A model generated the notes under the pieces. That model saw nothing but the letters and a program-made list of their open reading frames with translations, was not told the DNA's origin and ran no database searches. Of a stretch of 64,000 bases of DNA, positions 3,431 through 36,422 are shown piece by piece. Positions within the stretch are counted from its first letter, which is position 1, and every line of letters begins with the position of its first letter. The stretch comes from Lepidodermella squamata (Eukaryota; Animalia; Gastrotricha), in NCBI GenBank assembly GCA_047495785.1, contig JBLDXI010000050.1, positions 124,001 through 188,000 on the forward strand, read 5' to 3'. A program made the translations under genes and the position numbers.

Positions 3431-3708
3431 TATTTGAACAATATATCCGAGCTGTAACCTTCCTGTTCTGTTATGCGTTTATTTTTTGCTCGTTACAGTA
3501 ATTTTTGGCAAAGAACAAAGAAGAAGCGTGTCTTCTTTCAAACAGCACACATGTCAACAAATAAACGTAGAGTAAAAATACTTTATTCAACAGCTTGTTT
3601 ATGACCTCTTTGTTCTCAGTTAAGCACAGTACTCGTAGCATACAACACATAGTATAATGACCGGCACGCATGAAAGCACTGGAATTGGCTCGTTATTGTT
3701 ACAATGAA

Positions 3709-6585: not shown

Positions 6586-6989
6586 AGGGGAATAACAATA
6601 ATCTGTCTTTTTGTAACGAGCAACGTTTCCTGGTTTAGCCTAATTCCGTTTCAAGCCTAAGCAGCAATTACCTACTCACACACAAGCAGCGTATAAATCA
6701 TTCACGCCAGGTTAACGTGTAGGCCTGAGCCAAATTCGTGAAACAATAAAGCCGCTCAGTACACGGCTATATGCGACGTCACGAGCGTGAAAGGGAAAGC
6801 GTACTGAAACATGAGTCGATGCAGCAGCGTAAGATGAAAAAGCGGTGAGTTGTGCATGAAAAAACTAAACGCAGCAATTTGAATCAGCCTCAAAGCATAA
6901 ATAACGCGAATACATGGCTGTGCCGGAGTTATTCACTCGTTGATAATTCATCCGGCAAGTCATATCCTCTTAACTTTTTGATTAACTAA

Positions 6990-7862: not shown

Positions 7863-7873
7863 AAAAAAATAAT

Positions 7874-9043: not shown

Positions 9044-9640
9044 GATGTTAGCGAGGTGTGGCTTTGTTTGAAAGACTTGTTTTCTAAAAAAGCTACCGAT
9101 GCGCGTTTTTTAGCCTTATCATAGAACAAACATTCTTTTATCACAGGAAGAGATATTGCTTAATGAAGAGATAACGTCATTGCGGCTTTTTTTATCGAGA
9201 AAATTCTAAATTTCCATTTTTTAGGTTAATTTTTTCATGAAATTCATTTTTTTCTTCGCCATGGTAGAAATCTTATTATTCAACTTGTTTGCTATTAGGA
9301 AAATTCATTTGAAATTTATATAAAATTATTCATGCCTTAAAGTTGAAAATGAATCATCTTATTTTTTTTTATGAATTTCGAAAAATTGGTGATAGATGCA
9401 CCAATTTCTATGCCTATTTCAAACTAAAGTGAGCCATTACGCAAATTTATTTGGATACGTAACTTATCTCTGCGTGACTCTTTAAACCAGACATCGTGTG
9501 ACTCGAATTTATCTGAGGGCAAGAAGATACCCCCTTACTTCTTATCAGCAGGCAACTACGCAGTGCGCATTGCTTACTTAGATGATAACAACTGGTACGG
9601 AGCGGCCCGAAATTTACCAAGTGTTCTTATTTTACCCAAA

Positions 9641-14438
<4,798 letters not shown>

Positions 14439-14560
14439 AGCTATATAATTACTATCATATTAGAATAATTATTTTGATTACATTCAAATTATAAAAACTT
14501 GTCACGTACACATATCAGCTTTACGATGGAAATAAAAAAGTAATTGAACAACGTAAAATT

Positions 14561-16127: not shown

Positions 16128-16644
16128 ATCTTTAAAATTGGCTTACTGTGAGACACCTTGCTAGGTTATGAATTATTTTTTATAATTTATAATTATCAAG
16201 TTATTTATTTATTTATTTATTTATCAAAAATTCATTCCCAAATTAAAAATTCACGAAAATTAATTGACGAAATTATTTATTTTGAATTTGAATTATTTCG
16301 AAATTATTTCCAATTAGCAAGGGTGCTAAGAAAAAAATCTTGTACTTTGATTCAATAGCAGTTTGTAGAGCTCCTGAGTAAACAAAGGGCATTCATTCAA
16401 AAACTAAGGCTAAGAACCAACTAAGCAATATACTGTAATATACGTCAGTGCTAGCTTTCGGCTCGTAGTCGTAGGTATAACAATTGCGGCGCTGTGTAAT
16501 CAGATGCCGACTCGGAACATATCATCTTTACGAGTAGTAGCCGCATGAAAATTTACCATATACCAGCAATTAGCTGCGATAATTTATTCAAGAAAAGAAC
16601 ATACATCAGACACTCAGCACCGTTTTTCACTCATTTTCGGTTCA

Positions 16645-18126
16645 ATGTTCACCAGCTCGCAGCCGAGAAAACTTTTTATTGACGAAGAAGGTATTTACTC
16701 TGTATATTTCCCATATTTCGAATCACCAGGGTCATTTTTACAGATTTTTTACAACCAAAATCCAGCTCAGTCCCTGGCGAGAAAGATGCAGTCGTGAATT
16801 TCGGAATCTCCCCAGTTGAGAACAGATGCTTCGACGTCCTAAATAATACCAATCGGATTACAATTCGAAAACCATCGAATTCGCTGTCTTCAAGTAGGGA
16901 AAACTTGTTCTGCGGTTCAAGTCGGTGTGAAAGCGCGACAGATCACGAAGAGCCGGCGAGGACATTCCAAGTTGTGGACTCCGACACAGGCCAGCATTTT
17001 CTCACTATCGTCCGGGGGCAATGCAGCCGAACTCAGTATTTAGTCTCAACCAACGATGAAGTTCTAGCAATATTCCAGAGGCAAAAGGGCCGGAAAGACT
17101 TTATGACCGTTTCAAATGCAAGCAATCGACTTTTAGGCATCGTAATTCCAGAGTAGGTCAAATTCATATGGTGATTCTAAAGTTCTATAATTTTCGGATA
17201 GCCAAGCACATTCCGGCATGATTTGCGGCTACCACTGCCTGGATAGCAGTAGCAGCGCAAAAATCATGGATTTGGAGCTGACTACAGCTTTCTGCTGTAC
17301 AAGTTGGAACGATCCGCTGCAATATGAAGTAATTTTTTCCTGTCGTGGGATTTTAAATAATACCTTGAAAATGTGCCTTAGATTTCTGCTAATCGTCAAT
17401 GGTCAATCGGAACATTTACCCGGCTGAGGCGAAATATTTACGGAATAGAATGTATGCCGCCAAAATAATCTTGAATTAACACTTTAACTGCAAAAACTAG
17501 ACTGCGAGATCCGACATTTGGATCCAAATCTTGAGTCTGTCAAAAGTCTTTTTTCGGGCCAACGATGCGTCGAGGGACAAAATGCCTGACGGCGAAATGT
17601 AGGCCATGGCCCAGCGGTTCTTTTGACACCAAATTCGGGGCCACATGGTCTGAGCAAATAGTCTTTGCTCTGTGAAATAACGTCGAAATTTTGGATTAGA
17701 CCCAAGAATTGGACCTAATTATTAGACCCAGATTGTGGCGCAACAATCGAAATTTCACTGTTTTTACAAGTTGATTTCTTTGCGCTCCTTGAAGTCTTTG
17801 GTGTCAAAAGAACCGCCGGGCCATGGCCTACATTTCGCCGTCAGGCATTTTGTCCCTCGACGCATCGTTGGCCCGAAAAAGGACTTTTGGCAGACTCAGG
17901 ATTTGGATCCAACTATCGGATCTCGCAGTCTATTTTTTGCAATTAAAGTGTTAACCCTTCACTTTTTTCCAGTTGATGGCAATACTGACAGTTTAATCAA
18001 GATTCTTTCTATTGCAGCAGCTATTTTTAAAGTGAGCATTTGTGTCGTCACAGGAGTACGTCAACAACCCACTCATATGCTTTCGTTTTACAGGAGCACT
18101 ACTTTGACAAGTTTTTTGCTGCGTGA
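16645..18126 (+). CDS. Phospholipid scramblase / tubby-C-like protein, about 6 exons
   Basis: Spliced reading ends ...IYGIEFDGNTDSLIKILSIAAAIFKEHYFDKFFAA*, matching the scramblase C-terminal F-G-I-x-F ... K helix pattern. There is an internal FCC motif. Confidence 0.6.
17480..17950. mobile_element. piggyBac-type MITE in a scramblase intron
   Basis: About 154-bp near-perfect TIRs starting CACTTTAA(C/T)TGC, flanked by TTAA on both sides (17476-17479, 17951-17954). Confidence 0.9.
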
Positions 18127-18315
18127 ATAGTAAAAAATGTAAAGAAGAAAAGTATTTCTCTTATGATAAACAATCCTTTTTTACTACCAGTGCTTTGAAA
18201 TCTATCATTCCGAAACCGGGTCACAAAAGCAACTCAATTTTCAATTCTTTATATCCACAAATCAATATTTTGCACTTCAAGCAACGATTCATAGCCATTT
18301 TAATTCAGCTCTTTA

Positions 18316-19736
18316 ATGAGGAACGCATCGAATCAGTTTCTTCAGATTCTGTATGGAGTTTCCATATTTATCTTCCTAGTCGCTGCGATTCCAAACAGCC
18401 AGAGCATGAACAAGGTACTTAAATTTGACGTGTCTCCTACGATTAAATTGAATTCTCCCAGATTTTCATTGAAGCAGTGAAAACAGGCAACATCACCCTG
18501 GTAGGAGAGCTTCTCGCTCAAAATAAATCCCTGGCTAACGCTCGATTCACTGATTTACCCCCGTTGAACGGATATGAACGACCCCCTTTCGATCGGCTTA
18601 TCGAAAACGCTCCAGCTATAGAAATCGCGGCTATTTACAACCAAAGCTACGAATTGGCCAAGATGTTACTTGAGAATGGCGCTCGAGTTGATGTGAAGGA
18701 TGACGGATTCTTGAGTGAAGGAAAAACGGCCTTACACTGGGCGGTCGTGAACGGGAGAGCTGACCTTGTCGAGCTTTTCATCAAATATAACGCCAGTGTC
18801 ACTTCTAAAGACAAAGAGGGCCAAGACGCCCTGTTTCTAGCTGTTGACTCCGTAAATCTCGACCTGGCCAAGTTCCTTTTGGCAAAGGGGGCGAAAATCG
18901 GTACAACAAACAAAAATAACGAGAGTTTAGTCTTCCTATCAGCTTCGAGGTGTAACTTGGAAATGGTACAGTACTTTCTATCGCAAAATCTTTCAGCTGA
19001 TGCTGAATCGTTATGGAAATGGCGGCCGATCTGCTTTTGCCTCTGGAATTCAAATGTGACCCAGCTGTTACTATCAAAAGGCGCCAAAGTGACGGGTGTT
19101 TGCGGAAATAAGCCTTTCATGATTCATTTGGTTGACCATTACAGCAACTGGAATATTCCAGTAGATGCAATCCGAATTTTGATCGAGAATGGCGCCAATG
19201 TTAACGCTTTATCACAATGGGGCGATTCTGTGTTGCAACAAGCTGTTTCTGATACTGACGTTGAGGTCGTTCGGCTTTTGATTGAAAATGGCGCGAAAAT
19301 GATTGTAGACAAAAATGGCTATTCAATATCGCTGAAAACTGCCTTAGATCAGCGAAATTTAACAATATCTCTCGACATTTTAAATTACTTGTCGGCGAAA
19401 GGCGACGCAATTGATGGAAAGTTGCGGAATAACGATACATTCCTATCGATGGTACTCAAGAAGAGAAATGTCATGTTGCCCTTTGTAAAGTTTGCCGTCG
19501 AAAAGGGCAAGGCGAATGTGAATAAGACGGATTCGGATGGCCGCAACTCTTTGCACCTGGCGGTTTTGAATTCATGGGCACCAACAGATGATAAATTGGG
19601 AACAGTAAAATATTTGGTCTCAAAGGGAGTGAATCGCAATGCGAAGGACAAACGCGGAAAAGCTGCTCTGCAATACGTCCAGGAGAGCCCAAATAATGCC
19701 GACCGACAGGATATCATCAATCTGCTGAGGTCTTGA
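18316..19736 (+). CDS. Signal-peptide-bearing ankyrin-repeat protein, copy 1 (exons 18316-18414, 18462-19736)
   Basis: Exon 1 reads MRNASNQFLQILYGVSIFIFLVAAIP..., followed by a phase-0 intron. About 10 ANK repeats (GKTALHWAV, GRNSLHLAV, LLENGA.VD). Confidence 0.9.
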
Positions 19737-19872
19737 CATTTCTTTTGTATACAATTTTCCGTCTCTTCAGCTTTCGTTTGACATAAAAATCAAGACAATT
19801 GGGGCAGATGGGGTTTCAAGCCGTTAAACTTCGGATGCGGTTTTGGGAGCCCCTTTCTAATAATCGAATATA

Positions 19873-22521
19873 CACTAGAAAAAAAATTAGGTTTATTAGC
19901 TAGATAAATAGCTAAAATTTAGGCTGGGATAATAACCCCGCTGGCGACGGGTTTATTATCTATTTTGGGTATGTATTTAGCTGGCGGTTTATTAGCTGAC
20001 TTTGGTTTATTAGCCTTCGTCCACGAAGCGAGCAGCATTATAGTTATCACCATCTGTGACCCATGACGCAACAATCGATTGAATTTTCGGACCCAGCAGG
20101 CCCTTCCTCCCTCCTCTTCCCTTTTTCTATTTTTCAGCGGAATTCGACAAAGTAGATTCCTCGATATTAATTATTACTTTATTAAAAAATATTCGCGAAA
20201 AAATTCACAATTCGAACATCAGGTAGATCAGGTAGATATAAATTCACAATATCAAACAGAGTTAATCAATTAATTCTATGTCAATGTCAATTTCCCGCGG
20301 AGATTTTCGAAGAGAAATCGACGAGATCGAGAAACGCATCGATTGTGTTCGCCCGCCGTGCGATTTCTAACGCAGCTTGATTAGGTTTTAGCTAGCCGCA
20401 TTCGATTCGCCATGACTGAGTCCACAAGCTTTCCACCAGCCATCTGAAAAATACCATAATATCAATCAAAATTAAACATGAAATTCGGAAAAAATTAAGA
20501 AATTATTTTGAATTTGAAAGAGCTCATTTGATATATATATATATGTCGTATCGTATAAGGCAATTTCTTCCAATAGCCGATTGAGATATCTCTATGAGCA
20601 ATCCGAATTGTTCCCAACGTCATTTTCAGTTATATTAATCATTTTTTAAAATTAGGAAACCAAGCAAGATTACAGAATAGCCCTTCGCCTATCTAGCAGA
20701 GCCCACTTTCCCTAATAACTTGTACCGCATCTGTGTGTTTTATGAGTTTCTAAAAAGCTAGCGCATTTTCACTGTAACTGTCTTCTGGCCTTCTGGGTCC
20801 ATTTAAACTGTTTATTAATAAATTATTAGTCTAATCGATTGGGCTATTCGGGCTCTTTAATATGTGATAGATCACAATTCAATAACCTGAAGGTTGATGA
20901 AAACATCAGTCAGAAAGTAAATTTCCGATTGCTCATTGATATATCTCTATCGGCCATTGGAGGGATTGCCTTTTACGATACGACATATATATTACTACCG
21001 GAAAAAATTGAATTTTCTAAATTTGCCTATAAATTTCGAATAAAAATGGCTCCTATTTAGAACGAATTGTCCCCATGAAATGAAGAAAATGTGAAATTTA
21101 TTTAGCGAGATCGAAGTGGTTCGACGGACATAATTTGTTTTCCGTTCGAAAGAGAAACCTGTCAAATTTCCGAGCGATTAGGATACAGTTTTAAAAATCG
21201 TCACGGTTGACTGGACCTGCGATATCATAGGCCACGCTCTATTAATTATTTTTAAAACGCAAGAACACTTAAACGCAATTATCAAAAGGAATTCCCAATT
21301 TAAATTCCTATCCTTAAAATCAACATACTATGCCAGGCAATCTTTTACTAGACAATGGTTTGGAGAAAAAATTCGCGAAATTCGATCAAAGTCCAAGTCT
21401 GAATTAATTGAAAAATTTGAAAACCTCGAAATGTAAAATTTGCCGTAATAGGAAAATATTTGAGATTAATCGCAATTGAAAATTATTTTTGAATAAATAA
21501 TTCATTCGGAAATTCACCTTAATTCGCCGTACAAATCTGACAAGTCGGCTCTTTGTTTCACAGCTAGCCAAGTGAGTCGATCTGAACCAGAGAGCAGAGG
21601 CGGGTCATTCGCTTCAGTTTGAAATTGAGCATGGCCGTGTTCGCCGTGTAGTCGATGCTTTCTAGCTTGATCGAACACCGGCCAATGTGCTTCGATTTTT
21701 CTGTTAATTGTTGTCAAAAAATCACAGCTTATTTTGTGATAAAACTGAGAAACTTACGGTTTTGCATATCTTCGCAACTATCAACAGCAGCGAAGCTGAA
21801 CATGCCGAAAATTCAACTGAAAATATTTAAAATTTAGAACCCGAACAGAGATCATTAGAACTCGAATTTTTTAAATTTTAATAAAATTTTACTCTTGAAA
21901 AATCCATAGTGAATACCGTAGATCATCAGCATATTCAACCTCCGAATAACACGAGCTTTGGTTAGGTTAGTATGTTAGTTTAATTATAAGTTACCGGTGT
22001 TAGAAAAGTCCGTGTTGGCCGGAGATAATTAGCTGATTTTCTGATTAAAATTTATTCCAATGTAAAAAAATTAATTCAGGAATGAAATAAAACGCGTCAG
22101 GTCAAGCCATCAAAATATCAATAAACAGGTAAATAGATAGAAGTTCTCACCTGACAGCCCTCCAATTTCGACTAATTGGTTCGGAAATCGACGCGGTTGT
22201 TCTTCCCGCGGTTTTAACTCTGAAAAACTACGAAAAATCGCTGCTGTGTTTGTGTGTGAAAAAGTCGAATGAAATACTTTCAAGTCGTAATCAGAAAGGG
22301 TCATGACTGCTGTTGCGTGGCGGGCGAATTTTATCAACAATGAAATCGATGGCTTTTTATCCGAAATTTCTCGATTTTCCGCGGCAATTTGTCCTAATTG
22401 CAGGCTGATTCATTTGACGCAGCTAAAAAACCATGAGATAAAAATCCGCTAATAAACCTCAGGATAAATAGCCATAAAAGATGATTATCTTCAGCTAATA
22501 AACCTAATTTTTTTTCTAGTG
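19873..22521. mobile_element. Non-autonomous CACTA/CMC-like DNA transposon
   Basis: Perfect 29-bp TIR CACTAGAAAAAAAATTAGGTTTATTAGCT. Subterminal GGTTTATTAGC repeats at both ends. The TSD is imperfect (ATA/AAA). Confidence 0.8.
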
Positions 22522-23221
22522 AAAAGTTTTCAATAAAAGTTGGCATAAGTATTCTCCTATCTTTACTTTCCCTCGAAGAAACAATAAAGATTTAACGACG
22601 CGTTTTAGCATGGCCTTTACCTGAAAAACGGGGTAATTTTGGACCTTATGCTTCAGATACGGGCCGATTGATTGATTTAGGATTCATCACATTAAAATTA
22701 AACTGATTTTGATGTAGACACAGAAAAACAAAAAATTCGAATTCTTTAAAACCGATGTCGAACCGTTTAAACTGATATGACATTCGGGCACGATTTGTGG
22801 CTACCCTTGCATGTTAAGGAATCTCTGAAGCTTTGACAAAGGATTTGAAACTGCACAAAGATCTTGACATTGCGATTTTATTTTATTTCAACATTATGAT
22901 TTACAAGTTGGAGCAATACGTTGCAATATGAATTAACTTCAGAAAGAATTCAAATAACCACCTGGCAAAGACATATTATATCATACGTATTTTCTCACAG
23001 TTTTTTGCTGCATGATCACTACAAAAGGAAAAAATCGTTTATTGCCTTTACTGACAAATGAAAAAGTCTTGGTAGCGTGTTTATGTCATGTTTCATGCAT
23101 TCCTAACTTGATAATTGGGTAATGCTTAAACCCTTCAACGGCAGCAAACCCTTTTTAATCTCAGATAAATGTTCGTTCTCTTGAAAAAAGTTGTTCAAAT
23201 TTTCAATAATTAACCTGTCAG

Positions 23222-24640
23222 ATGAGGATCTTATCCAACCAGTTTTTTCTGAGACTCTATGGAATTTGTATGCTAAGCTTCTTTATCGCTGCACTGCCAG
23301 AGAAGCAGGACGACATTAAGGTACCTAGATTTTCAAAATTTAGAGATTAGGGCTCCATGCTCCATAATTTACGATTTTCATAGATTTTCTTCGAAGCTGT
23401 GAGAAATGGCAGCACACCAGTGGTAAAAGATCTTCTCGCTAAGAATAATTCGCTGGCTAATGCTCGGCAACCGCCTCCTCTCCTGTGGCCAGTAGACGAG
23501 CGATACGAAAACGCCCCTGCACTAGAAGTCGCTGTTGCCTTCGACCAAAGCTACGAATTAGTTAAGCTGTTACTTGACAATGGAGCTGACGTGAATGCGA
23601 AAGATGATGGTTATCAGAGAACACCTTTACTCTGGGCAGTTGTGAATGACAGAATAGATCTTGTCGAGCTACTTATCGAAAATAATGCCACCATCAGCGA
23701 TAGGGAAGTAATTGATGACGATGATGCCCTGTTACTGGCGGTGGATCAAGATAATCTCAACATTACCAAGTACTTGGTGTCGAAAGGGGCCGATGTTAGA
23801 ACGAAAAACTTCTTTAACCTGACTTTACTCGATTCCGCGGCTAATGAATGCAGCTTTGAAATGCTGCAGTATTTGCTGTCGCAAAACTTGACAGCGAACG
23901 ACAATAATTGGCCAGAAGGAGCTTGGCGGCCGATTTGCAATTGCCTGTCCTATGCAGATGTAACTCGGCTGTTACTGTCAAATGGCGCAAACGTGAATGG
24001 TAAATGCAGTGAAGAACCTCTCATCTGCACCGCGGTGCATTGTCATCGGGATTCAGTTGCCGCCACTATTCGAGTTTTGATGGACAACGGCGCAGATGTT
24101 AATGCTGTTTCGAAAAATGGCGATTCTGTGCTGCAGCTAGCTGTTTCTGAAGCTAACGCTGATATCGTTAAGCTTCTGATTGAAAATGGCGCTAATATGA
24201 TTGTGGACAAAAATGGCTATTCCCTATCGCTTAGAGCTGCCTTGGATCAGATGAACGTAACATCGTCTCTCGAGATCTTAAATTATTTGTTGGAAAAAGG
24301 TGACGCGATCGATGGCAGGTTGGGAAATAACGACACGTTCCTATCGACGGTGCTCAAGAAGAGCAGAAACCAAGTCCTGCCGGTAGTCAAGTTTGCTGTG
24401 GAAAAGGCCAATGCGAATATTAACGCGACAGATTCAGATGGACGCAACGCTTTGCATCTGGCGGTTTTGATGAACACGTGGACAAGCTATACTAAATCGG
24501 ATACTGTCGAATACTTAGTCTCCAAAGGGGCGAATCGCAATGCAGAGGACAAACTTGGTAAAACGGCCCTGCAGTACGCCCAGGAGATCGAATTTCCCCC
24601 TGAACGATATCAAATCTCGAAAATATTGTCACACTATTGA
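23222..24640 (+). CDS. Signal-peptide-bearing ankyrin-repeat protein, copy 2 (exons 23222-23320, 23384-24640)
   Basis: Exon 1 reads MRILSNQFFLRLYGICMLSFFIAALPEKQDDIK. Same intron position and phase as copy 1, with colinear ANK repeats. Confidence 0.9.
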
Positions 24641-25587
24641 ATCAAGCCGAGCTGACACTAATTAAACGCTATTTTCCGCTTATCATATAATATGCTGTAC
24701 AGTGATTAATTTGAAACAGCATGCTCATGGCTAAAATCAGGCAGGATAAGACTTGTGTACAGTCTTATTCAATCTTATACCCTCTGTTTTCTGATATTGG
24801 TTGGTTGATTTATTTATGATTATATGATTCATGATTCTACTAATTTTGATTCAGCTGTGGAATTTTTCGTAATTAAAAACAAGTCGATTGCTCTGATTTT
24901 TTCTGATTTGCTAATGAAATGCCTTGAATTTTCGCTTTTTACATTCTATTTAAACGTTATTCTCTTCCTATAAATTATATTTAAAAAAATGGAAAAAATT
25001 GTGGATTCATTTTAGATAAAACGCCAATATCACTTCGAAGAAGTGTCAAATGACTCAGCCTGATTACCGGATTTACTGATTTACTGTCACGACTCCCGAA
25101 AGGAAACTGAAACACCTGAAAAGGAATTTGAAGCCGTGTCAGATCGGGGCAAAGCTTCATTTCACTTGCTGAATGCTTACTTAGCTGAATAGAATAATCT
25201 TCTACACATAGGAAAGCTCACGTTCTTTCACATTTTCATTCATGTTTTTAACGCCCATTTTTACACTTCCGCTTTAACACTGACAGCTTTGCTATTTATA
25301 GAGTATGAAGTGAGATTTCGTATAGTAGTCACAACTCTGTCTTACGTATATTTTTTGGGAGAATTGCTTTGACAAGTTTTTTTCTGCATTAACGGCCAAT
25401 GTCGAACATTACACATTAAACATTAAATATGAGGGAAATATGTAATTCTCTCGAAAAACCTTCATTGTTTGTGCATTGTCGGATTTTTGCAGTTCACTTA
25501 TTATTAGTTTCAGCAGAAAAGAAAAGAAATTTAGTTTCACCTTCAAAATCAATATTTCAAGATTGCAAGGCAACATCTATCTGTTAC

Positions 25588-27049
25588 ATGGGAAAGTTAT
25601 CCTATCGGTTTTTGCTGGGCCTGTTTGGAATTTTCGTGCTAAGCTTCCTTATAGCTGCACTACAGGAGAATCAGGACGACAACTGGGTATCTATTTTTCT
25701 AATCTTTAAAAATCAGAAATCAGAAATTCATTAGATTTTCTGGGAAGCCGTGGGAAGTGACAACATCAGCCTGGTAAAAGATCTTCTCGCAAAAAATGAA
25801 ACGCTTGCCAAAGCTCGATTACCGGAGTTACATCGAAACGCCTGGGGCATTGAGCCTCTAGAAATGGCATACCAAAACGCCCCGTTTATAGAAGTCGCTG
25901 CTATTTACAACCGAAGCTACGAACTGGCTAAGCTGTTACTTGACAATGGCGCTGAAGTGGATGCGAGAGATTATGGCGAGTTTGGGAGAACGGCCTTACA
26001 CTGGGCGGCCGTTAGACGGAGGCTAGATATTGCCGAGCTACTCGTCGAAAATAAAGCTAACATCACTGTGAAGGACAAACAAGGAGGCGACGATGCCCTG
26101 TTACTGGCTGTTGCTTCTGGAAATTTCAACCTGGTCAAGTACCTTGTGTCGAAAGGGGCCGATATCAACACATCAGACAACAATAACTACGGTGTGGTGG
26201 ATCGCGCAGCTGGTGCATGCAGCTTAGAAATGCTGCAGTATTTTCTATCGCAAAATCTCTCAGCTGATGGCACGAGAGGAAATGGGTCCGAAGGAACATT
26301 GTGGCCGATCTGCAAATGCCTTTGGAATCCGAATATCACTGGGCTTTTAATGTCGAGTGGCGCCAAAGTACCTCGTCTATGTGCTCATCAACCTCTTCTG
26401 CTGCACATGGTTTATAATTACGAGAGAAACTTTGACTCTATTCCCGTTGAAACGTTTCGAACTATGATCGACATGGGTGCAGATGTTAACGCTGTTCCAT
26501 ATGGCGGTTCTGTCTTGCAGGAAGCTGTTTCTTTTACTAATAAAGACATCGTCCAGCTTTTGGTTGAAAGAGGCGCTAAAATGACTGTGGACGAAGATGG
26601 TTATTCCCTATCACTGAGAGCTGCCTTGCGTTCGAAAAACACAGCTGCAGCTTTCCAGATCGTGAATTACCTACTAGAAAATGGCGATGCGATCGACGGA
26701 AAGTTGAATAATAGCGAAACGTTCCTATCGATGGTACTCAAGAAAGGAAACGGCCCTTTGCTGTCGTTTGTCTGGTTTGCCGTCGAAAAGGGCAAAGGGC
26801 AAGGCGGATGTTAACGCGACGGATTCCGATGGCCGAAACGCTTTGCATCTAGCCGTTTGTTTTTTCTCCTGGTATGACAACTTGGATACTGTCAGATATT
26901 TGGTCTCCAAGGGGGTGAATCACAATGCGAAGGACAAATTCGGCAAAACAGCTCTGAACTATGTCATGGAGAATCCTTATTTTCCGCATCAACAGGATGT
27001 GATCAAAGTGCTGTCAACTATGACTTCGCGACACTACATTGAATCTTGA
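25588..27049 (+). pseudogene. Ankyrin-repeat copy 3, frameshifted near the C-terminus (exons 25588-25686, 25735-27049)
   Basis: A 7-nt duplication (AAAGGGC) at ~26787-26800 relative to paralogues shifts the last two repeats into ORF 26768-27049. It could be a truncated allele or an assembly error. Confidence 0.8.
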
Positions 27050-28075
27050 TGAGTTCAACATGATTTAAAAATATAATGATTGCTTCATTTTAGCTTGAAT
27101 CAACTGATTTCGATTTAGCTTTACTCGCAATTCACGTTCAATAGTACAGCCGCTACTTGTGTGGACAATTATAATGGAATTAGAACAAGCCCAGAAGCCT
27201 TACCGACTCGACTTTCTTCACTTGGCTTTACGTGGATCAACGTTTGAAAGGATGCTCGGCTAGCCTTGCTAGCTAGATAAGGAATTTCTGTTTCGTGTTT
27301 CGTGATGATAGAGAGGGACCTTGAGATGAGAAAAACCTCACAGGGAGAACCCTCTAGTGAAAATGGACCTGCTTTGTTACGTTATGGCACATAACGTTGT
27401 AACGTTGCGGTTTAACGTTTCTTACACCACCTGAAAGAAAAAATGGCAAAAATTGCAAAACGAGAGATCACAGGATAGATGAAAGCGGAAGATGACATGA
27501 CACCATCTCACTCATCACAACAAGCTCAAGGGTCACAAAAAACTGATGAAAGATAGCTACATAAATGTTCAGCAGCGCGAACAGTTAAAAAGGGTGTGAA
27601 GTAGGATCTAAAGCTGAGGTGTTTCTCAGAGCCCAACCGAAGGGTCCTCCATTTCAGGTATTTCAGCCTATCTGTGGTTAGAAACTCGAAAATGGGGTGT
27701 CACATCACCACTTCACCACAGCACCCCTGTACTTCGCACTTCGCCCCCTGAATAAGTTGGAACTCTCATCGCGTGGCCAAAAGCTTCAAAGAATGCAACC
27801 GACTGGGTCTGGCTCGAAAGCTCAAACACCCTTCAACGGCGGGACGACATCTAATCGGCACAAGTCTGCCTTCGCCCCACTGGAAGATCATCTGAATCTG
27901 GATGAACATGTAAAGAAGCTTCAACTATGGCATCCGGATTCCGAATAAAATTCAAACATGCATCTTGCAATAAGCATAATAAAAAATCAGTTCAACAAAC
28001 ATCCGAAGTACAAAGAAACATTTATTTACCAGAATTAGTCATATTCTTTTAATGATAGTTTTCAGAGAAGGGATA

Positions 28076-30109
28076 TTAAATTTCAATCATTTTTTGTACA
28101 TAATATGCGTCCACGAAAGCAGTTACAATAACGACCAAACTCGCAGCGCAAACATCCGCAACTCTGACATACTCAACCGATTTTTGATTTTCTATTCTGT
28201 GTAACGACACAGTGAACGTAATGAACTCATAAAAGCAAATTAAAAGCCCCATGGTAAATTTGAAAGAGATGATGCTGACGAGGTAAACAGTCTCTGAAGT
28301 CTTGGGTATGTTCTCGAACACCAATGACAGCATAACAGCAAACGATAAAACCAAAGCGACGCTGATACCAGGTCGATCCGGTACCTCCGGCGGTAAGACC
28401 AGTGTTGTAGTTTGAAGTATGTACAGCGAGATAACTGGGAGAAACAAATATGTGACGTAGTATTCAGCTCGACGTTTGAATGTGACCGGGAAATACAACC
28501 GGCTAGATTCTAGCTCTGTGTAATCAATACGCGTCTTACCACGGCCCACGAATGTCCAGAGATCTGTGTCGCCGATGAATGTCAGCCTAGACGACGATTC
28601 AAGTTCGAAATTGGTGATATTGTATGTTGCGTAATCAACGACTTCCTCGCTTGCAAAGACGATATTGCACTCGAGAACATCGAATGGGAACTTGGCGAAG
28701 GAAAATTCAGCGCACACTGTGTCCAAGCGAGTTGTCACCCAAATCGACGAGATGCCATCGTCAGTGAATGGCCAAGTTATTACTTTTTTGTCAGGATCGC
28801 TGGGAAGATAATACATTTAAAACTATGCATGTAGTCCTATATAGGGCTTCAATATTGAAATTTCACATTTTTGAAGTTAACAATATTTTCATTTTTCTCG
28901 GGGCAGTTATGACTCGATGACATTTGACCGTTAATAGCAAGTAAAATTGGGGTTTGGCAGTGCGAGAAGTAGGATCCTCGAACTAGGGGGTATTTTCGGG
29001 CCCAAATTTTATGACCAAAGGGTCCCCCTGTGGGTTTTTGAGGGAATTTTCCCCTTCGGCCTCGGCCTTGAGATGGGTAAATCGAGTACGGAGAGTTCAG
29101 ATATGAACGATTTACGAATGTTACACCGTAAAATATCGAATTGGCCAAGCTACTCGACCTATATTTTTGAGGACAATTCTATATTTTATACAATATCCGG
29201 GTGGATATCATAGGTGGATAGCACGATGGATATCAGCCTGAAGGATGAATATCCATCGCTGTCCACCGATGGCACCCGGATATGGTGTTATCGGGCGTCA
29301 AAATCATCAAATCCGGATAAACGAGTAAATTATGCTAATTTTAATGAAATGCGCGCTTAAAGAATTTAGTTATTTAATGTATCATAATCATATGATGATA
29401 ATAGTGCAAACTAATTCCCCACGCAATAAATTCTGATCTCATTTTCTTGTGCACACTCGAAATTATTTAGGGTAATCTGAGGTGAGGAATCTCGCTAGAT
29501 ATTCAAAAATGTTGTTGGGGTCAAGCTAGTGTCTCTACGACAACCTGAGCAAATAACATTATTCACTTGTTAGTGGTCATTTTTCAAATTATCAAGAATA
29601 ACCTGAATATCGGTGGAGATGTTCTCAGCGGGTTGACTTGAATGAGCGATGGGATCCAGCGATGAATCCCCAGCTTCACTACCGTCAGCTGTTCCAACTT
29701 TTGTGTCTCTATTAGATCTCTGCACAGTGTCTCGTTTTGAATTAGGTCTTCGCAGCTCGCGACTGGACAAGTTGATCGCCAAGATGCCGTAATTGACACC
29801 AGCAGGGACAAGCTATAAGATTAGACATTTTGTGATATTTTATGAATGATGGCAAAACTATGCTCTAATTATATACCTTTGATCAAGGTCATCGATAGCC
29901 AAGAACTGAAAGAGGCTGAAGGTTATTTGCACCTCAAGAGGTTGATTGCGGTAGATTATCCAATAGTTAGGTAAATCTGGGGCTGAAGCTTCTGGGCAGA
30001 ACTGATCGTAAGCTTTCCCTATTGAAACCTTGGATAGCTCTGGAGCTTCCAAAGCGTCGGAAACGCAGATAAATTTAAGAATGATCAGAAGTAGCGCTCT
30101 CCCTTTCAT
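28076..30109 (-). CDS. Divergent Cys-loop ligand-gated ion channel subunit, 3 exons (30109-29877, 29812-29603, 28799-28076)
   Basis: Two phase-2 GT-AG introns join in frame. Signal peptide, WIP, Cys-loop CAEFSFAKFPFDVLEC, KRRAEYY, 4 TM. Confidence 0.85.
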
Positions 30110-30591
30110 TTTAGCTTGAGCTGCAATTGAAATTACTCGACTGGAGACAATATTCCTTGAATTAGATGGAGTACTGACAACTTCGATACTGGTTTCCTGT
30201 GGCTATTTGCATAGCATTGATTCTCATCTTTCATATCAAAATAAAGTGCTGTTGTGGAAAATTTGAGCTTGGGATCGCTTAGTAAACCAATAGAGCTTGT
30301 TGACATTTCTTAAACCGGGTCTGTTTTATTCTTTTCAGGCCTTAATCAATTCACCATTGAATAAAACTAAACTGATTTGATTTAGAGTGGTGTTCAAATC
30401 TATGCATAAAGGAAGGTGTGAAATGGATGAAACGGGATTAACAAAAATAGTTCACGTTTGGGCAAAGTAACCTGACAGAATGTAGATAATTGTAAAGGCG
30501 CGTTGCAGCTCAGTCTTGCTAGCAAAATTCGATTCGGGTTAATTGCAGGCGCCAGCTGAAACATAGCGGAAAAAATTTGGCTGAAACATTA

Positions 30592-30772
30592 ACAATTTGG
30601 CTTTTGAAATTCGATCCGCCGTAGACATTCCGAAAAGTCCGATAGCATTCATATGATATAGGATTTAAGAAGGTTTTTTGTGAGCCTCTACGGAATTTCC
30701 ATGCTTAGCTTCCTTATCGCTGCTCTGCCAGAGAAGCAGGACGACAGATTATGGCTCTATAATTTACGATTC
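30592..30772 (+). pseudogene. Remnant of a fifth ankyrin paralogue (upstream block, partial exon 1, partial intron)
   Basis: SLYGISMLSFLIAALPEKQDD is near-identical to copy-2 exon 1 and is followed by a copy-2-like intron tail (ataatttacgatt). 30592-30668 resembles 34312-34380. No exon 2 follows. Confidence 0.8.
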
Positions 30773-30910
30773 ACTCTCGGAATTCTCCTGTTACTAAACA
30801 CGAGAACCTACAGTTGTATCGAAAAAATCTTTTTCCTCAACTCCGGGGTCATTAAACCGCTTTTAGACCAGTCCCGCCAAAACCAACCTTAACATTTGCA
30901 GGTGTCCTAA

Positions 30911-30948
30911 GAAATGTACCCTAAAACTCAAGTTTTAGGGTACATTTC
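30911..30948. repeat. Perfect 18-bp inverted repeat with a 2-nt loop
   Basis: GAAATGTACCCTAAAACT-CA-AGTTTTAGGGTACATTTC. Confidence 0.9.
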
Positions 30949-32803
30949 GATGCGAGAGATTTAATTTGATTTGATTTACAGGGTCTGATGATTTGATTTG
31001 ATTTGATTGATTGATTTGATTTGGTGGGGATTTGGGGAATTTATTTAAAAGGACCCGTGATTTACTGAAGAAATCAAATCAAATCTAATCTAATCACTGG
31101 CAATGGTGCTGTGAAAAGTGGATGTGAACAATTATTGCGAATTTCAAAGATGCTAGGATGCTAGGATGCTATATCTTGCTACAGTAGTAAATTGTTCAGA
31201 TTCCTCGCCTGTAATACGGCGGCCATAGATCGATCCCCAGCCAAAAAGTGATTTTTCATTTCTTCTTCTCTATTTTCTCTCATTTGAATATGCACACATC
31301 GAATGAATCAAAACACATGAATTCACAGGGCGTGAAATAACGTGCATGTGTTTGATGCCTTCTCAAAAAAGCATGAAAAGGCTACGCACAGGGAGCGAAG
31401 TACAGGGTGCTGGGTTCCATAGGGCTCAGATTACATAGAACATAGAGCGTCTGTAAGCTCGCTAATGTTACCAAAAACCGCAAATTAATGGATTATTTTT
31501 TCCTGTGAAGCCTTTATACCATAAATATAAACCGCAGGCTGACCTTATCAAAACGTTTCTCCGTGAGCCGGTAACTTTTGGTCGCTGACTGGAGCATTCG
31601 AAAAAGTATAAATGTCGTGGTTTTCTTTCGGGCAGTACGGTTTTTAAATGCATAGTTCAATACTGAACATCGGTGGGCACCTGCCCTCTTGTGATCAAAG
31701 AAAGTCCATAAAGAAAATAAAAGTGGACACGCAGGATCCATCAAATCCCACAGCCTTCACAATTTTTTATTTTTGTTGTCTGAAATTATTTTCCTTGAAT
31801 TTGAGATTTCCGAACAAAGAAAAACAAATTGGCGTAAAAGCAGCCGAACAAGTCAGTGCAATTCGATTTTACCCCTTTCTTCGGCGAGAATTTCCCCTTC
31901 TAAGGCTAAGGAAAGTCGATGGCCGTTATGATTGAGTTGACTGTGCGGGCCGATTGAACTAGGGGAGAGATGATCCCTAGCGGTACTTCGCTCTCTGGAA
32001 CGATGCGCTTCAGCAAGGGAAGCGTTAACAGCGCAGCGATAATTCGTCAGGCGCGTTAGCCGGTCGCCAAATTGTGAAATTGTGATATCGTCGAGTAGCG
32101 AAAATGGGACGTCCAGCAAGGTTTCACGCCCCGCAGATTCTCTCGAAACCTTTCGGGACGATAATTTTGTCCATTTGCCTCGCACCTTGCACCTTGCGCC
32201 TTGCACCTTGTTTGAGCTTGAATGACAAGTGATGATTTGAAGATTGGTAAGCCGAGCGGTTATTGCGAAACCAACTGGAATTCTATGGTCAGATCAGTAC
32301 ATTGTAAATCTCACCTGGGTTCTGAGCTGGAAGAATTCGTCGGCGTGAGTGCTTCCACCGGTTCGACGGACTTCGCAGCATTCGACAGGGCTCGTCGGAT
32401 GCGTCGCTAGACCGAAGCGGTACACGGGCCCGCTCGGTTGCCTGACATAACCGTAATCCATACCGACTTGATCCCAGAACCGCTGGAGAACGATAGCCGG
32501 GCGTCCAGTTTCCACAAAAATGTAATGGAGGAAAACGACTCGACTGACAAACTAAATTGTTGTTATTAAATCTTTTTTGGGGTTAAAATAGTGCACTTGT
32601 TAACAACTGAAGGGCGAGGCGCGAGACGGCACGCGTCAAACCGGTGACGTCTTGCTGCGCACTACAATTGTTTGCAACATGTTGTACCAATCTGGCGGGC
32701 CACACATTGCTACAAGCTAAGCCTTTATAAGCGAAGCAATCAGAGCTAAAGTCTATCATTCCTCACTTGAATTTCTTAAAGTTACTTGAATTTTCCATTC
32801 TTT

Positions 32804-33849
32804 ATGGAGCCGCTCAACTTGTCGATCTCAGCCATCAACCATCAGCCGCCTGTCATTCAGCCCGTCTCTCAACCGTCCATGCCCCAACCAGCCTCCAGTC
32901 GAATCAACAATCCACCTCGTTTGAAAGCCGATGGAAAAAGACCGGGTCCAAGAAAAGTGAGACTTTGCTTTTTGGTCATTAAATTTGTTTATATTGTAAT
33001 CCTTGTTTAGTGAACAGACGTCGGAACTGGTCTACGGAGGAACTGCGGGAATTAGATGCCTTTATCGAATACTGCGAAGACCTAGTGCCGCCCGCCAAGC
33101 CGTCGCAGGCCACCTTTCGTCGATGGCTGGAATATTGTGAGGAAAATAGCAGAAATTGGATGCTCAATTTTCCGAATCGACGGCAGAGCGCGGTGCTATT
33201 CAAGGCACGGGGAGTGGTCCGAAAGCGAGCAATGGGCTGTGCCTCGTCTCCACAGCCAGCAGTCCAACCAGCTCCTCCGATGCAGCAACCAAGGTCAAAT
33301 CAATTGGTGTTATCATCAACCGTCAACCATCAGCCGCCTGTCTCTCAGCCGTGTGTGTCCCAGCCTGCCTCAAGCCGAATCAACAATCCACCTCGTTTGA
33401 TAGCCGATGAAAGGGAGACCGAGTCCAAGAAAAGTGAGACTTCGCTTTTTTGGTTCAATTTGTTTATTGTAATCCTTTTAGTGAGGAATTGGTCGAAGGC
33501 GGAACTGCGCGCGTTGGACGCATTAATTGAATACTGCCAAGACCTAGTGCCGCCCGCCAAGCCGTCGAAGATCACTTTTCAGGGATGGCTGAAATATTGC
33601 GAGGAGAATAACAGCAACTGGTTGCTCAATTTTCCAAATTGCCGGGAGAGCGCGGTGCTATTCAAGGCGAGGGAAGTGGTCCGAGAGCGAGCAATGGGCA
33701 GGGCTTCGGCTCCACAGCCAGCAGTCCCACCAGTTCCACCGATGCAGCAACAGGTGTGGTATCAACAGGTGTGGCAGCCCCAGCCGCTGTTTTGGCAATT
33801 GGCTCAGCAACCGTTTTATCCGATCAATTGCGGGCGAATGGAAAACTGA
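32804..33849 (+). CDS. Internally duplicated Myb/SANT-like protein with P/Q-rich linkers; possibly TE-derived or degenerate
   Basis: Two ~490-bp units, each with an equivalent GTGAG...TTTAG intron and the domain RNWS..EL..LDA.IEYC.DLVPPAKPS..TF..WL.YCEEN...FPN...SAVLFKAR. Unit 1 lacks 1 nt relative to unit 2 near 32940. Confidence 0.5.
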
Positions 33850-34972
33850 CTGTGACATTTCATTTAGTCTGAAGTTTTTTCTATTTCTGCGATCTCGTGG
33901 CTGCTTTGAAAATATTGATTTCGGATTCAATTATAAAAAAAAATAGTTTTTTGTGAACCTTCTACTTCCATAACACAATTATAAAACAAAATAAAATGCA
34001 ATCTTAGAAAACAATGGGGAACGGTGTCTTTTTGGCATATCAATTATGAGCTTATTCCTCATTGCATTGGCAGATACCGATTACGGCGTTGACAACGATG
34101 ACTCGATGATAATAAATATACCTCAAGAATATCCGGGATGGCCGTTTTTACCTCCACAGAGCCGAGGGAAGAAAGGGGATAAAATGACTTACAGTAACCA
34201 GCTTTTCTTAGCTAAAAACGTGTTTAGTACACTCAGAGCCGTTTCCTGTTTCATAATTTCGTGTATTTTTGAAAACTGTGTTTGAAACTGGTTTAGGACA
34301 TCACTCATTAGCAATTTGGCTTTTGAAATTCTATCCGCCTTTAACATTCCGAAAAGTATTTATATTGTATAGGATTTAAGTAAATATTTTGTTGAAGCAA
34401 ACCAAGCTGACGTAAACACCACGTGATTCTCTGTAGGTATGCTATTTATCCAAACACAATAATAATGTCTCTCTGGCTATCATTCATTTCTTTTATTCAT
34501 CATTCATTAGAAAACTCAACCCGTGTATATGTTTTTTACACGCCCGCTTTAACACTGACACATTTTTTAAAGCTATTTTAAAAAGTGGGATTTCGTATAG
34601 TAATAGCTTATCCTTACGTATTTTTCTTTATAGAGAGCATTATTACCTTGACAAGTTTTTTCTGCATGAACGGCATCAATGTCGAACCTTAAAAAAAATA
34701 GGAGAAATAATCTTCTCTCGAAAAACCTTCATTTGTTAAGGAAAAGTTTCACCATTGTGTTTAATCCGAATTTTGCTGTCCGTAATCAGTGCATAGCATC
34801 AACGGCCCAAAACACTTCGGTTTCTCCTTGCAAAATCAAAAGTTAAAAATTATACTCCAATGTATTGTTTTACCATTGTTACATCCTCAAGCCTGCGACC
34901 TCGGATATTCGGAGCTTGTCTCGATTATCTCCAAAACACAGTAGTATAATCCATCCATTATCCATCTGTTAG

Positions 34973-36422
34973 ATGAATAACTTTTTACACCGGTTTTTGC
35001 TGAGCCTTCTCGGAACCGCCATGCTGCTTTTCCTTATCGCTGCATTGCCAGAGCAGCAGGAAGAGGTATTTAACTTTCAAAATTTGACGATAAGAGCGCT
35101 GAAATTCACGATTGTCATAGCTTTTCTTCAGAGCTGTGAATACTGGTTATACCTTCGAAGTCAAAGACCTTCTCGCTAAGAACAAATCGTTGATCAAGGC
35201 TAGGCATACTGGTCCGCGTCTTTTTCAAATCCTTTTCGAAGAGCATTTTGGCAATGCCACCGCATTAGAAATCGCTGTTGTTTACAACCGAAGCTTTGCA
35301 TTGGCTAAGCTTTTGCTTGACAGTGGAGCTGAGGTGGATGCGAAAGATTACGGACGATACAGTTATGAAAGAACGGCCTTAATCTGGGCGGCCTATTGGG
35401 GGAGGCTAGATCTTGCCTCGCTGCTCATCGAAAATAAAGCTAACATCAGTGTGAAGGACAAAATGGGTGACGATGCCCTGTTACTGGCGGTTCAATCTCG
35501 AAATTTAAACCTGGTCAAGTACCTTTTGTCTAAAGGGGCCGATATCAACACATCAAACAACGATAACTACGGTGTTGTGGATCGGGCAGCCGACGGATGC
35601 AGCTTAGAAGTATTACAGTATTTTCTTTCGCAAAATCTTTCAGCTGATGGCTCGAGAGTTATTGGGTCTGGGAGAACACTGTGGCCCATCTGCAAATGCC
35701 TTTGGAATTCGAATATCACACAGCTTTTACTTTCAAATGGCGCTACATTTCCTGTTCTCTGCCTTGATGTGCCTTTTCTGATCCATATGGCTAATAGCTA
35801 CGAGACTTGGGATGGAGAATTCAGAGAATTCAGGTATATTCCTACTACATCGTATCAAACTATGATCGACCTTGGCGCAGACGTTAACGCTGTTTCAGAT
35901 GGCTTATCAGTCTTACAGGTAGCTGTTACTCGTTCTAATAAAGACATCGTCCAGCTTTTGATTGAACGAGGCGCGAAGATGACGGTAGACAAAAATGGCT
36001 ATTCCCTATCGCTGAGAGCTGCCTTGCGTACTTGGAAACCAAACGCATCTATCGAGATCTTGGATTACTTGCTGGAAAAAGGTGACGCGATCGATGGAAA
36101 CTTGAATAATAGCGAAACGTTCCTATCGATGGTGCTCAAAAACAGAACCGGCTTCGTGCTACCGGTTGTCAAGTTCGCTGTCGAAAAGGGCAATGCGAAT
36201 GGTAACGCGACGGATTCTGTTGGACGAAACGCTTTGCATCTAGCTGTTTTGATGAACAGTTTGACAGTCATCGATAAATTGGATACTGTTAGATATTTGG
36301 TCTTAAAGGGAGTGAATCGCAACGCTAAGGACAACCTTGGAAAAACGGCCCTGCAGCACGCCCATGAGATAAGTCGACCAGATGATCGCCAGGCTTCAAT
36401 GAAAATACTCACATACTATTGA
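34973..36422 (+). CDS. Signal-peptide-bearing ankyrin-repeat protein, copy 4 (exons 34973-35065, 35121-36422)
   Basis: Exon 1 reads MNNFLHRFLLSLLGTAMLLFLIAALPEQQEE. Phase-0 intron, colinear ANK repeats. Confidence 0.9.

Follow-up and report, generated by a model that had tools for sequence, protein, structure and literature searches.

Leader-bearing ankyrin-repeat genes of Lepidodermella squamata: a candidate family of secreted, N-glycosylated proteins with a variable concave face

Results

Structure of the four-copy ankyrin gene cluster

We analysed a 64-kb stretch of DNA (hereafter, the window) from Lepidodermella squamata, an animal with a small genome, and detected by ORF scan four ankyrin genes, c1 to c4, all on the + strand. 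The four genes shared the same plan: a leader-like exon of 31–33 codons starting with ATG, a phase-0 GT..AG intron (47, 63, 48 and 55 nt in c1, c2, c3 and c4, respectively), and a second exon about 420 codons long. Exon 1 ended in every copy in V/I-A-A, followed by IP, LP or LQ (arrows below mark the putative cleavage point). A trypsin-like gene was found immediately upstream and, like the ankyrin exon, the neighbouring Cys-loop channel-like genes were intronless.

Exon 1 of c1 (18316..18414, +; 33 codons) was signal-peptide-like, with R in the n-region, a 15-residue hydrophobic core and VAA↓IP. It was followed by the intron (18415..18461, +) and by exon 2 (18462..19736, +; 424 codons plus stop), which comprised 12 ankyrin repeats, four Cys and, as the first-pass annotation had counted, 10 N-x-S/T sequons. 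The c2 gene combined a signal-peptide-like exon 1 (23222..23320, +; 33 codons, IAA↓LP), placed by the leader and splice model as were those of c3 and c4, with an intron (23321..23383, +) and an exon 2 identified by ORF and Pfam (23384..24640, +; 418 codons plus stop) that contained ankyrin repeats and 9 sequons. The c4 gene consisted of a signal-peptide-like exon 1 (34973..35065, +; 31 codons, IAA↓LP), an intron predicted from the sequence (35066..35120, +) and an exon 2 (35121..36422, +; 433 codons plus stop; ORF and Pfam) with ankyrin repeats, 11 sequons and four Cys.

The signal-peptide-like exon 1 of c3 (25588..25686, +; 33 codons, IAA↓LQ) and its GT..AG intron, also predicted from the sequence (25687..25734, +), preceded an exon 2 that was open for 359 codons up to a premature stop (25735..26814, +; ORF); a tandem duplication of 7 nt (26787-26800) puts this exon out of frame. 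The last two repeats were open in another frame (26801..27046, +). This displaced tail had been described as a remnant next to four paralogues: the four genes are present, but the remnant is c3's own frameshifted C-terminal end, and a search for an additional remnant copy across the window at E<=10 recovered none.

The proposed splicing of a signal-peptide exon to the ankyrin exon was confirmed for c1 and c2 by RNA-like contigs. These belonged to a public run (X1), whose RNA nature is guessed and whose organism label differs from that of the DNA run (X2), and they held precisely the predicted exon 1-exon 2 joints (one X1 contig per joint), which X2 lacked. In particular, the c1 joint led from exon 1 to 18462, skipping 47 nt bounded by GT..AG (cut +2), and c1 exon 2 matched X1 contigs at about 99% identity; the c2 joint led from 23320 to 23385, with one letter substituted at 23384. 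The mature mRNAs of c1 and c2 include the leader.

An irregular 12-repeat ankyrin solenoid

ANK-type Pfam families (Ank, Ank_2, Ank_3, Ank_4 and Ank_5) were the only ones detected above the curated cut-off in exon 2 of all four copies (Ank_2, E=4e-40 to 3e-58; Ank, 1e-26 to 1e-36); no non-ANK family passed it in c1-c4, and no toxin, pore-forming or translocation domain was found. The AlphaFold2 model (pLDDT 90.3) had 12 helix pairs, which corrects an initial estimate of about 10 repeats. According to this model, the fold is a continuous 12-repeat ankyrin solenoid of stacked helix-turn-helix and hairpin units, with irregularities in repeat 6 (a truncated helix) and in repeats 7, 9 and 11 (insertions).

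Canonical ankyrins (AnkR D34 and AnkB R13-24) form the same continuous 12-repeat superhelix, and Foldseek aligned them with the model at TM 0.72–0.76 and an rmsd of about 4 Å (TM 0.74–0.76 for AnkB R13-24). Canonical ankyrins are, however, adaptors of the cytosol that also carry ZU5, UPA and death domains, whereas the family studied here shares about 20% identity with them, carries a leader exon and matches ANK families only.

Leader, sequons and cysteines

By inspection and hydropathy, all 10 modelled members of the family carried the same leader features: K or R first, a hydrophobic core of 13–18 residues, and then A↓xP or S↓AP. The flank N-terminal to the core was positive and the C-terminal flank acidic, which gives an N-in/C-out bias. 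A small-x-small site followed by a helix-breaking P, Q or S was present in every member (AA↓LP, SA↓LP, HS↓AP, SA↓AP), and even L009 and L010 (33–38% identical) had textbook leaders (VHS↓AP and ISA↓AP, respectively). No 19-residue segment of exon 2 had a Kyte-Doolittle mean above 1.65, in agreement with the claim that there is no TM segment besides the leader core.

Sequon density was 2.1–2.5 per 100 aa, against an expectation of 0.6–1.1 given the composition (P<=0.02 for every one of the 8), a 2–4-fold excess; the median of generic ANK proteins (n=120) was 0.54 per 100 aa. The sequons at c1 residues 21, 60 and 354 were retained in 8/8 or 7/8 close copies, while those at 110/112 and at 322/324 had each shifted position inside their own loop. 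The four Cys that had been singled out as conserved (C-x-[LF]-E, PICxC and a downstream C) were invariant in 8/8 close paralogues and also present in L011. Both C191 and C214 were lost in L009 and L010, which kept C164 and C193. Judging from this one paired-loss event, the pairing is probably C164-C193 and C191-C214, and the two disulfides would brace the irregular repeat 6.

A predicted extracytosolic location of the ankyrin domain is supported by the charge bias with the A↓xP site, the lack of any other span, the sequon excess and the invariant Cys. We propose that the leader targets the growing polypeptide to the ER, with probable cleavage after the conserved small-x-small site, and that the ankyrin domain would then fold in the ER lumen and gain about 8–11 N-glycans. 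As the protein lacks a membrane span, a retention signal and a GPI-type tail, it would be released from the cell. On these sequence features, c1-c4 probably encode ankyrin-repeat proteins that are soluble, secreted and N-glycosylated and that would act extracellularly as binders, as their fold suggests. The more specific roles put forward by the first-pass annotation (immunity, symbiont recognition, mucus or toxin) are speculative.

The same sequons and Cys would be accounted for equally well if the leader were not cleaved and tethered the glycosylated ankyrin domain at the cell surface or in the Golgi or vesicle lumen, as in type II membrane proteins, for which the charge bias predicts an identical N-in/C-out topology. 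The core had 18 residues in 5/8 close copies, and 17–18 in 6/10 modelled members (L002, L003, L004, L005, c3 and c4), a borderline length that is compatible with an uncleaved signal anchor. The cores of c2, c1 and L009 (13–15 residues), however, are too short for a stable span, and the helix-breaking residue follows the small-x-small site in every member; we consider such membrane tethering unlikely.

Variation among paralogues and selection

We recovered the near-invariant framework segments and the variable helix-1 ends at the places where they had first been described. Variation was not spread uniformly: entropy was concentrated on the face (1.30 bits), compared with the outer helix 2 (0.98; P=0.009) and the framework (0.69). 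The positions most variable among paralogues were those randomised in DARPins (2, 3, 5, 13, 14 and 33), and face variability peaked in R3-R8 and was lowest in R11-R12.

Pairwise dN/dS (NG86) was 0.24–0.48 overall and 0.11–0.87 on the face. With our own code for M0, M1a and M2a, the M0 omega was 0.457, consistent with the IQ-TREE values (0.41–0.45). The M1a/M2a comparison gave 2dlnL 21.9 for all 414 codons, with 5% of sites at omega 3.9, and 2dlnL 4.9 (p=0.085) when restricted to 343 well-aligned codons; three of the four candidate sites were face positions. We relied on the pairwise and the M0/M1a/M2a estimates and set aside the per-partition omegas of IQ-TREE, which carried no information, since that analysis fitted branch lengths anew for each partition. 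The evidence for positive selection is only suggestive: face omega was about 0.3–1, and the test was significant only with the poorly aligned loops in. Of the diversifying selection on the binding surface suggested by the first-pass annotation, the concentration of variation on a DARPin-type face held, but diversifying selection itself was not established.

A family of pseudogenes was ruled out by the long open frames, by dN/dS values below 0.5, and by transcription. The family appears to be under overall purifying selection, with a face that probably evolves nearly neutrally. The C-terminal module (repeats 9–12) would be constant among the paralogues, whose differences lie mostly on the concave face of repeats 3–8, so they would probably recognise different ligands.

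Family size and homologue searches

Genome-wide, the 12-repeat, 4-Cys subfamily was a closed set of 11 genes, one of them broken, and 5 were located on the same contig. The plan of exon 1, phase-0 intron and exon 2, including the intron position, was common to 10/10 modelled members. L042 (C23) was excluded, as it had 31% identity and lacked the Cys pattern. The window copies were separated by dS of 0.5–0.95 and were not mutual closest relatives, which rules out a recent tandem amplification; the family appears to have expanded through old duplications. To call it a repertoire is generous for 11 genes, one broken, which fall short of the large number of variants that the word implies.

Word-index homologue searches with the whole exon 2 and with residues 160–352 returned generic partial ANK matches only (23–35% identity), from a database that lacks the family's own proteins, so that missing orthologues there are no proof of lineage restriction. 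Among the best outside matches were ANK proteins from bacteria and metagenomes, some of which carried extracellular modules such as dockerin (P0019). A query with a Cys-loop channel-like protein gave no match at the strict cut-off of E<=1e-10, an exact-protein look-up was empty, and the assembly contained no COX1. When the family alignment was searched as a profile against 1.84 billion representatives, the top 150 consisted entirely of giant multi-ANK proteins whose scores were summed, which swamped the search and made it unable to reveal orthologues. The ESM Atlas gave only generic bacterial ANK clusters, and neither an orthologue nor a published animal counterpart was found in the homology and literature searches.

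Discussion

Known systems with secreted ankyrin repeats

The secreted ANK proteins that we found described in publications serve as effectors or inhibitors. Among them, the ANK family of oomycetes, like the one described here, is a lineage-specifically expanded eukaryotic ankyrin-repeat family that is predicted to be secreted, and its members are effectors of plant pathogens with a presumed site of action inside host cells (PMC11139960); we found no specific similarity to it, and our family comes from an animal. Bd3460 of Bdellovibrio bacteriovorus is a signal-peptide ANK protein that is exported to the periplasm, where it works outside the cytoplasm and its concave face binds and blocks an enzyme (PMC4686830), but it is bacterial, has six repeats and no glycans, and its sequence kinship to the family is limited to the ANK consensus. 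Latrotoxins, which were among the fold matches (Foldseek 9go9 and 7pty), are animal ANK-repeat proteins acting outside the producing cell; they exceed 1000 residues and have N-terminal pore-forming parts, whereas here ANK repeats alone follow the leader.

By analogy with these proteins, and with a trypsin-like gene just upstream, the products of c1-c4 might be secreted to serve as effectors, or be made by glands (venom-like, digestive or adhesive), with targets on or in the cells of another organism, and would then not be receptors for self-surveillance. We regard this as improbable, given that only ANK families match, with no domain for toxicity, pore formation or translocation, and that the heavy predicted glycosylation and the disulfides point to an extracellular working site.

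DARPins offer a structural parallel to the secreted binders that we favour: the fold is the same, the top Foldseek match (6mol_A) is an extended DARPin, and the positions randomised in DARPins coincide with the most variable ones here. Unlike DARPins, c1-type genes are natural and encode 12 irregular repeats with a leader, many sequons and four conserved Cys, and there are 11 genes only, which diverged via ordinary duplication.

Origin and compartment

The first-pass annotation had suggested that the intronless ANK exon was acquired by horizontal transfer or retroposition behind a host signal exon. The ANK part is indeed a single exon, bacterial and metagenomic ANK proteins (some dockerin-bearing) are among the best outside matches, and bacteria have Sec-exported ANK proteins (PMC4686830). 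Nevertheless, the low and partial identity of those matches corresponds to generic ANK similarity, and the profile search, swamped as it was, named no specific donor. GC (0.45) and GC3 (0.47–0.49) of the family equal those of the intronless Cys-loop channel-like neighbours, and the spliceosomal intron is identical in phase and position in 10/10 modelled members. The capture of a host signal exon by a foreign or retro-copied gene is very unlikely, and we abandon this part of the earlier proposal.

Hardly any weight can be given to cytosolic ANK proteins on an N-out membrane anchor, with functionless sequons and Cys: ANK domains of animals are almost always cytosolic, but the positive charge before the core and the acidic one after it are the reverse of such an anchor, and the sequon excess, its conservation and its within-loop relocation would be left unexplained, as would the four invariant Cys.

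Ankyrin repeats outside the cell

Few protein-binding modules are as common as ankyrin repeats, which in animals are regarded as intracellular. To carry outside a fold that normally works inside cells, as the soluble, secreted reading predicts, would be unusual for an animal. It is conceivable, although we hold it only tentatively, that an animal lineage made the ankyrin repeat a general extracellular recognition scaffold, with soluble humoral binders whose central concave face is diversified between paralogues and whose constant C-terminal repeats would dock on a common partner. This would recall the use of LRRs by jawless vertebrates: lamprey VLRs employ an LRR solenoid extracellularly, with a variable concave face. 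The likeness to VLRs is a functional analogy only, as these have another fold and are somatically assembled, and nothing in our family hints at somatic diversification or an immune role.

If the secreted reading is true, a transcribed and selectively maintained animal family with leader, sequons and Cys would change the view of ankyrin as an intracellular fold, and would represent a natural adaptation of this fold to the oxidising, glycosylating secretory pathway. The predicted disulfides and glycan sites may show how nature would stabilise DARPin-type reagents meant for secretion. The locus is also a warning for annotation, since one missed mini-exon alters the predicted compartment of entire gene families. 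Finally, the family would suggest that an invertebrate lineage which has received little study has a class of recognition or inhibitor proteins, extracellular in location, that is still to be explored.

Gene structures and splicing

The window (C50:124001–188000) belongs to a 121-Mb assembly (151 contigs), and we detected four long open frames on its + strand whose Pfam matches were to ankyrin-repeat families only (Ank_2, E 4e-40 to 3e-58). Upstream of every long frame lies a mini-exon with an ATG (31–33 codons), which encodes 1–2 K/R, a hydrophobic core of 14–18 residues, and ...(V/I)AA with IP, LP or LQ behind it, and then an acidic segment. Its GT donor is in phase 0, and the AG acceptor, 47–63 nt downstream, is in frame with the first ankyrin helix, [IL]F[IFW]xAV. 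The four genes, all on the + strand, are c1 (exon 1, 18316–18414; exon 2, 18462–19736), c2 (23222–23320; 23384–24640), c3 (25588–25686; 25735–26814) and c4 (34973–35065; 35121–36422). A tblastn search of the window with each copy, down to E=10, recovered no copies beyond these four, and c3 was split over two frames. Alignment of c3 with c1, c4 and L005, a close paralogue outside the window, revealed AAAGGGC twice, a 7-nt tandem duplication at 26787–26800 that shifts the frame and leads to a stop at 26812–26814, with the last two repeats open in the shifted frame (26801–27046). This duplication may be allelic, arise from misassembly or mark a recently formed pseudogene. Four paralogues and a remnant had been described in the first-pass annotation; the four copies were confirmed, but c3 is broken and the "remnant" is its displaced tail.

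We compared two public sequencing runs, X1 and X2, over 18250–24249, which spans c1 and c2. The depth of X2 was even over the whole stretch (~80–140 outside repeats), and we therefore consider it DNA. X1 dates from 2015 and carries an organism label different from that of X2; its run type is a guess, but it behaves as RNA, because its depth was zero over the intergenic positions 21050–22449 and 22650–23249 while c1 and c2 were covered. In X1, a single contig joined 18414 to 18462 ("skips 47, GT..AG, cut +2"), exactly the predicted c1 intron, and a single contig joined 23320 to 23385, with one base substituted at 23384, corresponding to the predicted c2 intron. Neither joint was found in X2 over the same stretch. 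Over 301 nt, the contig with the c1 joint matched c1 at ~99% identity and so does not come from a paralogue. The proposed splicing of the signal exon to the ankyrin exon is borne out by these two joints, one contig each.

Neighbouring elements and genes

Between c1 and c2 we found a 2.65-kb element (19873–22521) with perfect 29-nt terminal inverted repeats (19873–19901 and 22493–22521). One X1 contig joined 19855 to 22521 with 17 other letters, and the insertion may therefore be polymorphic or missing in that sample. Nested inside it is a MITE-like element of 456 nt (20537–20992) with 28-nt inverted ends, whose DNA depth of 2000–3300, against ~110 elsewhere, implies many copies. Transcription of this element is seen in X1, and the interval 20530–20985 is skipped by one X2 contig.

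Several intronless genes of ~390–415 codons (1765–2934, +; 54819–55985, −; 60183–61427, −) contain a neurotransmitter-gated ion-channel ligand-binding domain and have typical signal peptides (e.g. ...ASVEA|AS); the first, used as query, had no database relative at E<=1e-10. These channel-like genes and the short spliceosomal introns of the window mark the source as an animal. An open frame 2 kb upstream of c1 (15333–16127, +) corresponds to the C-terminal half of a trypsin-type protease and contains GDSGGP. Between c3 and c4, a frame of 279 codons without a Pfam match (33010–33849, +) contains a ~70-residue motif twice (NWS.EELR.LDA.IEYC.DLVPPAKPS...), with a segment rich in Pro and Gln after each copy. 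Finally, we identified an HPP-family membrane protein frame (3709–4593, −; Pfam TM_HPP, E=1e-41) with a GC3 of 0.575 versus 0.46–0.52 in its neighbours, and a frame with a PPDK_N domain (pyruvate phosphate dikinase/PEP-synthase N-terminal; 10970–12208, +; E=2e-66) that may continue the frame at 9563–10765.

Family size, history and origin

At the first-look stage of the genome search, ~1,900 candidate places in the 121-Mb genome matched an ankyrin query. Six-frame whole-genome searches with c1 and the distant member L009 as separate queries recovered an identical closed set of 8 close and 3 distant members. The close copies comprise c1–c4, L004 (C50:13554–17834, lying 109 kb upstream on the window's own contig), L002 (contig C34), L003 (C30:1391844–1396124) and L005 (C30), and share 49–72% mutual identity, except for L003 and L004 (96% in protein). 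The distant copies, L009, L010 and L011, are all on contig C30 and are 33–38% identical. The next match, L042, was without the family features and was rejected as a member. The plan of exon 1, phase-0 intron and exon 2 was present in all 10 modelled members, with introns of 47–72 nt. The leaders of L009 and L010 are of textbook type, with VHS|AP and ISA|AP at their ends; L011 has a leader-like start within its own exon.

The codon tree, (c1,(c2,(c3,(c4,L005))),(L002,(L003,L004))), indicates that the window copies are not each other's closest relatives. Pairwise dS among copies was 0.45–0.95, and the window array is old. L003 and L004, on different contigs, are 88–93% identical over 4 kb including flanks, which points to a recent segmental duplication or, alternatively, to separate assembly of divergent haplotypes.

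Horizontal transfer or retroposition of the ankyrin exon, suggested earlier, is unsupported: the GC (0.45) and GC3 (0.47–0.49) of the ankyrin exons equal those of the neighbouring Cys-loop channel-like genes, which are likewise single-exon, the leader intron is common to all modelled members, and outside database matches were generic (partial, 23–35% identity), the databases being swamped by ankyrin consensus similarity.

Topology, sequons and cysteines

The net charge before the hydrophobic core was positive in 7 of the 10 modelled members and zero in the other 3, and after the core it was acidic in 9 out of 10, a pattern that predicts an N-in/C-out orientation. All 10 have a small-x-small site with x-P (or Q-S/Q-E) after it, despite subgroup differences in the rest of exon 1. 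In exon 2 we detected no 19-residue Kyte-Doolittle mean >1.65, in agreement with the absence of a transmembrane segment noted before, and no hydrophobic C-terminus or KDEL-type end.

The eight close copies contain 8–11 N-x-S/T sequons per protein, compared with 2.6–4.4 expected from residue shuffling (P <0.0002 to 0.02), and their density (2.1–2.5 per 100 aa) exceeded that of 120 generic ankyrin proteins (median 0.54, maximum 1.37). In c1 numbering, the sequon at residue 21 was conserved in 8/8 close copies, that at 60 in 9/10 members and that at 354 in 8/9. In two loops the subgroups share a sequon whose position differs by two residues (110 or 112; 322 or 324). Other ankyrin open frames of the same genome ranged from no excess to a similar one, strong in L016 and L018 as well, so a high sequon density is not a feature of the genome as a whole. 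The four cysteines previously described as conserved were invariant across the eight close copies and L011. L009 and L010 both retain C164 and C193 and both miss C191 and C214, a single evolutionary event that weakly suggests disulfide pairs C164–C193 and C191–C214.

The main rival to a cleaved leader is an uncleaved type II anchor, in view of the hydrophobic cores of 18 residues in several copies. Based on the charge pattern, the cleavage-type site, the sequons, the cysteines and the lack of a transmembrane segment, the most likely reading is that the ankyrin domain is lumenal or extracellular.

Fold and variable positions

The AlphaFold2 model of c1 exon 2, built with a 10-sequence alignment, had a mean pLDDT of 90.3 and a pTM of 0.80, and comprised 12 helix pairs instead of the ~10 repeats originally counted per copy. 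It includes a low-confidence loop after repeat 1 (residues 33–39), a truncated helix 1 in repeat 6, which bears the PICxC motif, and insertions in repeats 7, 9 and 11. The best full-length Foldseek matches were AnkB R13-24 (TM 0.74–0.76, rmsd 3.9 A), AnkR D34 and an extended DARPin.

We assigned c1 residues to the 33-residue DARPin register via the model helices and calculated mean column entropies over 7 non-redundant close copies. Entropy was highest at the concave-face positions 2, 3, 5, 13, 14 and 33 (1.30 bits), followed by the exposed face of helix 2 (0.98 bits), other loops (0.87 bits) and the framework (0.69 bits); the face exceeded both the outer positions of helix 2 (P=0.009) and the framework (P=7e-9), which confirms the earlier description of variation concentrated on the binding face. 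Register position 15 was very variable too. Face variability was highest in repeats 3–8 (1.3–1.9 bits) and lowest in repeats 11–12 (0.5–0.8), and the atypical repeats 9–10 were nearly invariant overall. The paralogues combine a variable central face with a constant C-terminal module.

Selection

Pairwise Nei-Gojobori dN/dS was 0.24–0.48 overall, 0.11–0.87 at the face and 0.16–0.44 in the framework, with face dN similar to or higher than framework dN (up to 2.7x). Codon-model likelihoods (M0, M1a and M2a; custom code, F3x4, optimised branch lengths) gave an M0 omega of 0.457, in agreement with IQ-TREE (0.41–0.45). M2a was preferred over M1a on all 414 codons (2dlnL = 21.9; 5% of sites with omega ~3.9), though half of the high-posterior sites were in indel-rich loops, and the difference was not significant when the test was restricted to the 343 codons that have a register assignment and lie away from gaps (2dlnL = 4.9, p = 0.085). 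Three of the four candidate sites remaining in this set were at face positions (Fisher P = 0.01), and the posterior mean omega was ~1.0 at the face and 0.54 elsewhere. The genes are under purifying selection, with the face evolving about neutrally; positive selection is suggestive, and the diversifying selection proposed in the first-pass annotation is unproven.

Relation to known secreted ankyrin proteins

In the full-text literature, we found secreted or exported ankyrin proteins in three contexts only: as effectors of bacteria and protists, in the bacterial periplasm (for example Bd3460, which has a signal peptide and inhibits an enzyme; PMC4686830), and in a family of oomycete effectors (PMC11139960). 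In the full text of open-access papers, we found no animal family of ankyrin proteins with signal peptides described. The secretory, glycosylated character first proposed for the family is likely, given the leader, the sequons and the cysteines, and its variation is focused on the face. The leader exon family would represent a small set of putative secreted ankyrin binders. The most likely mechanism is that each presents a glycan-covered, disulfide-braced ankyrin domain whose central face would be specific to each paralogue.
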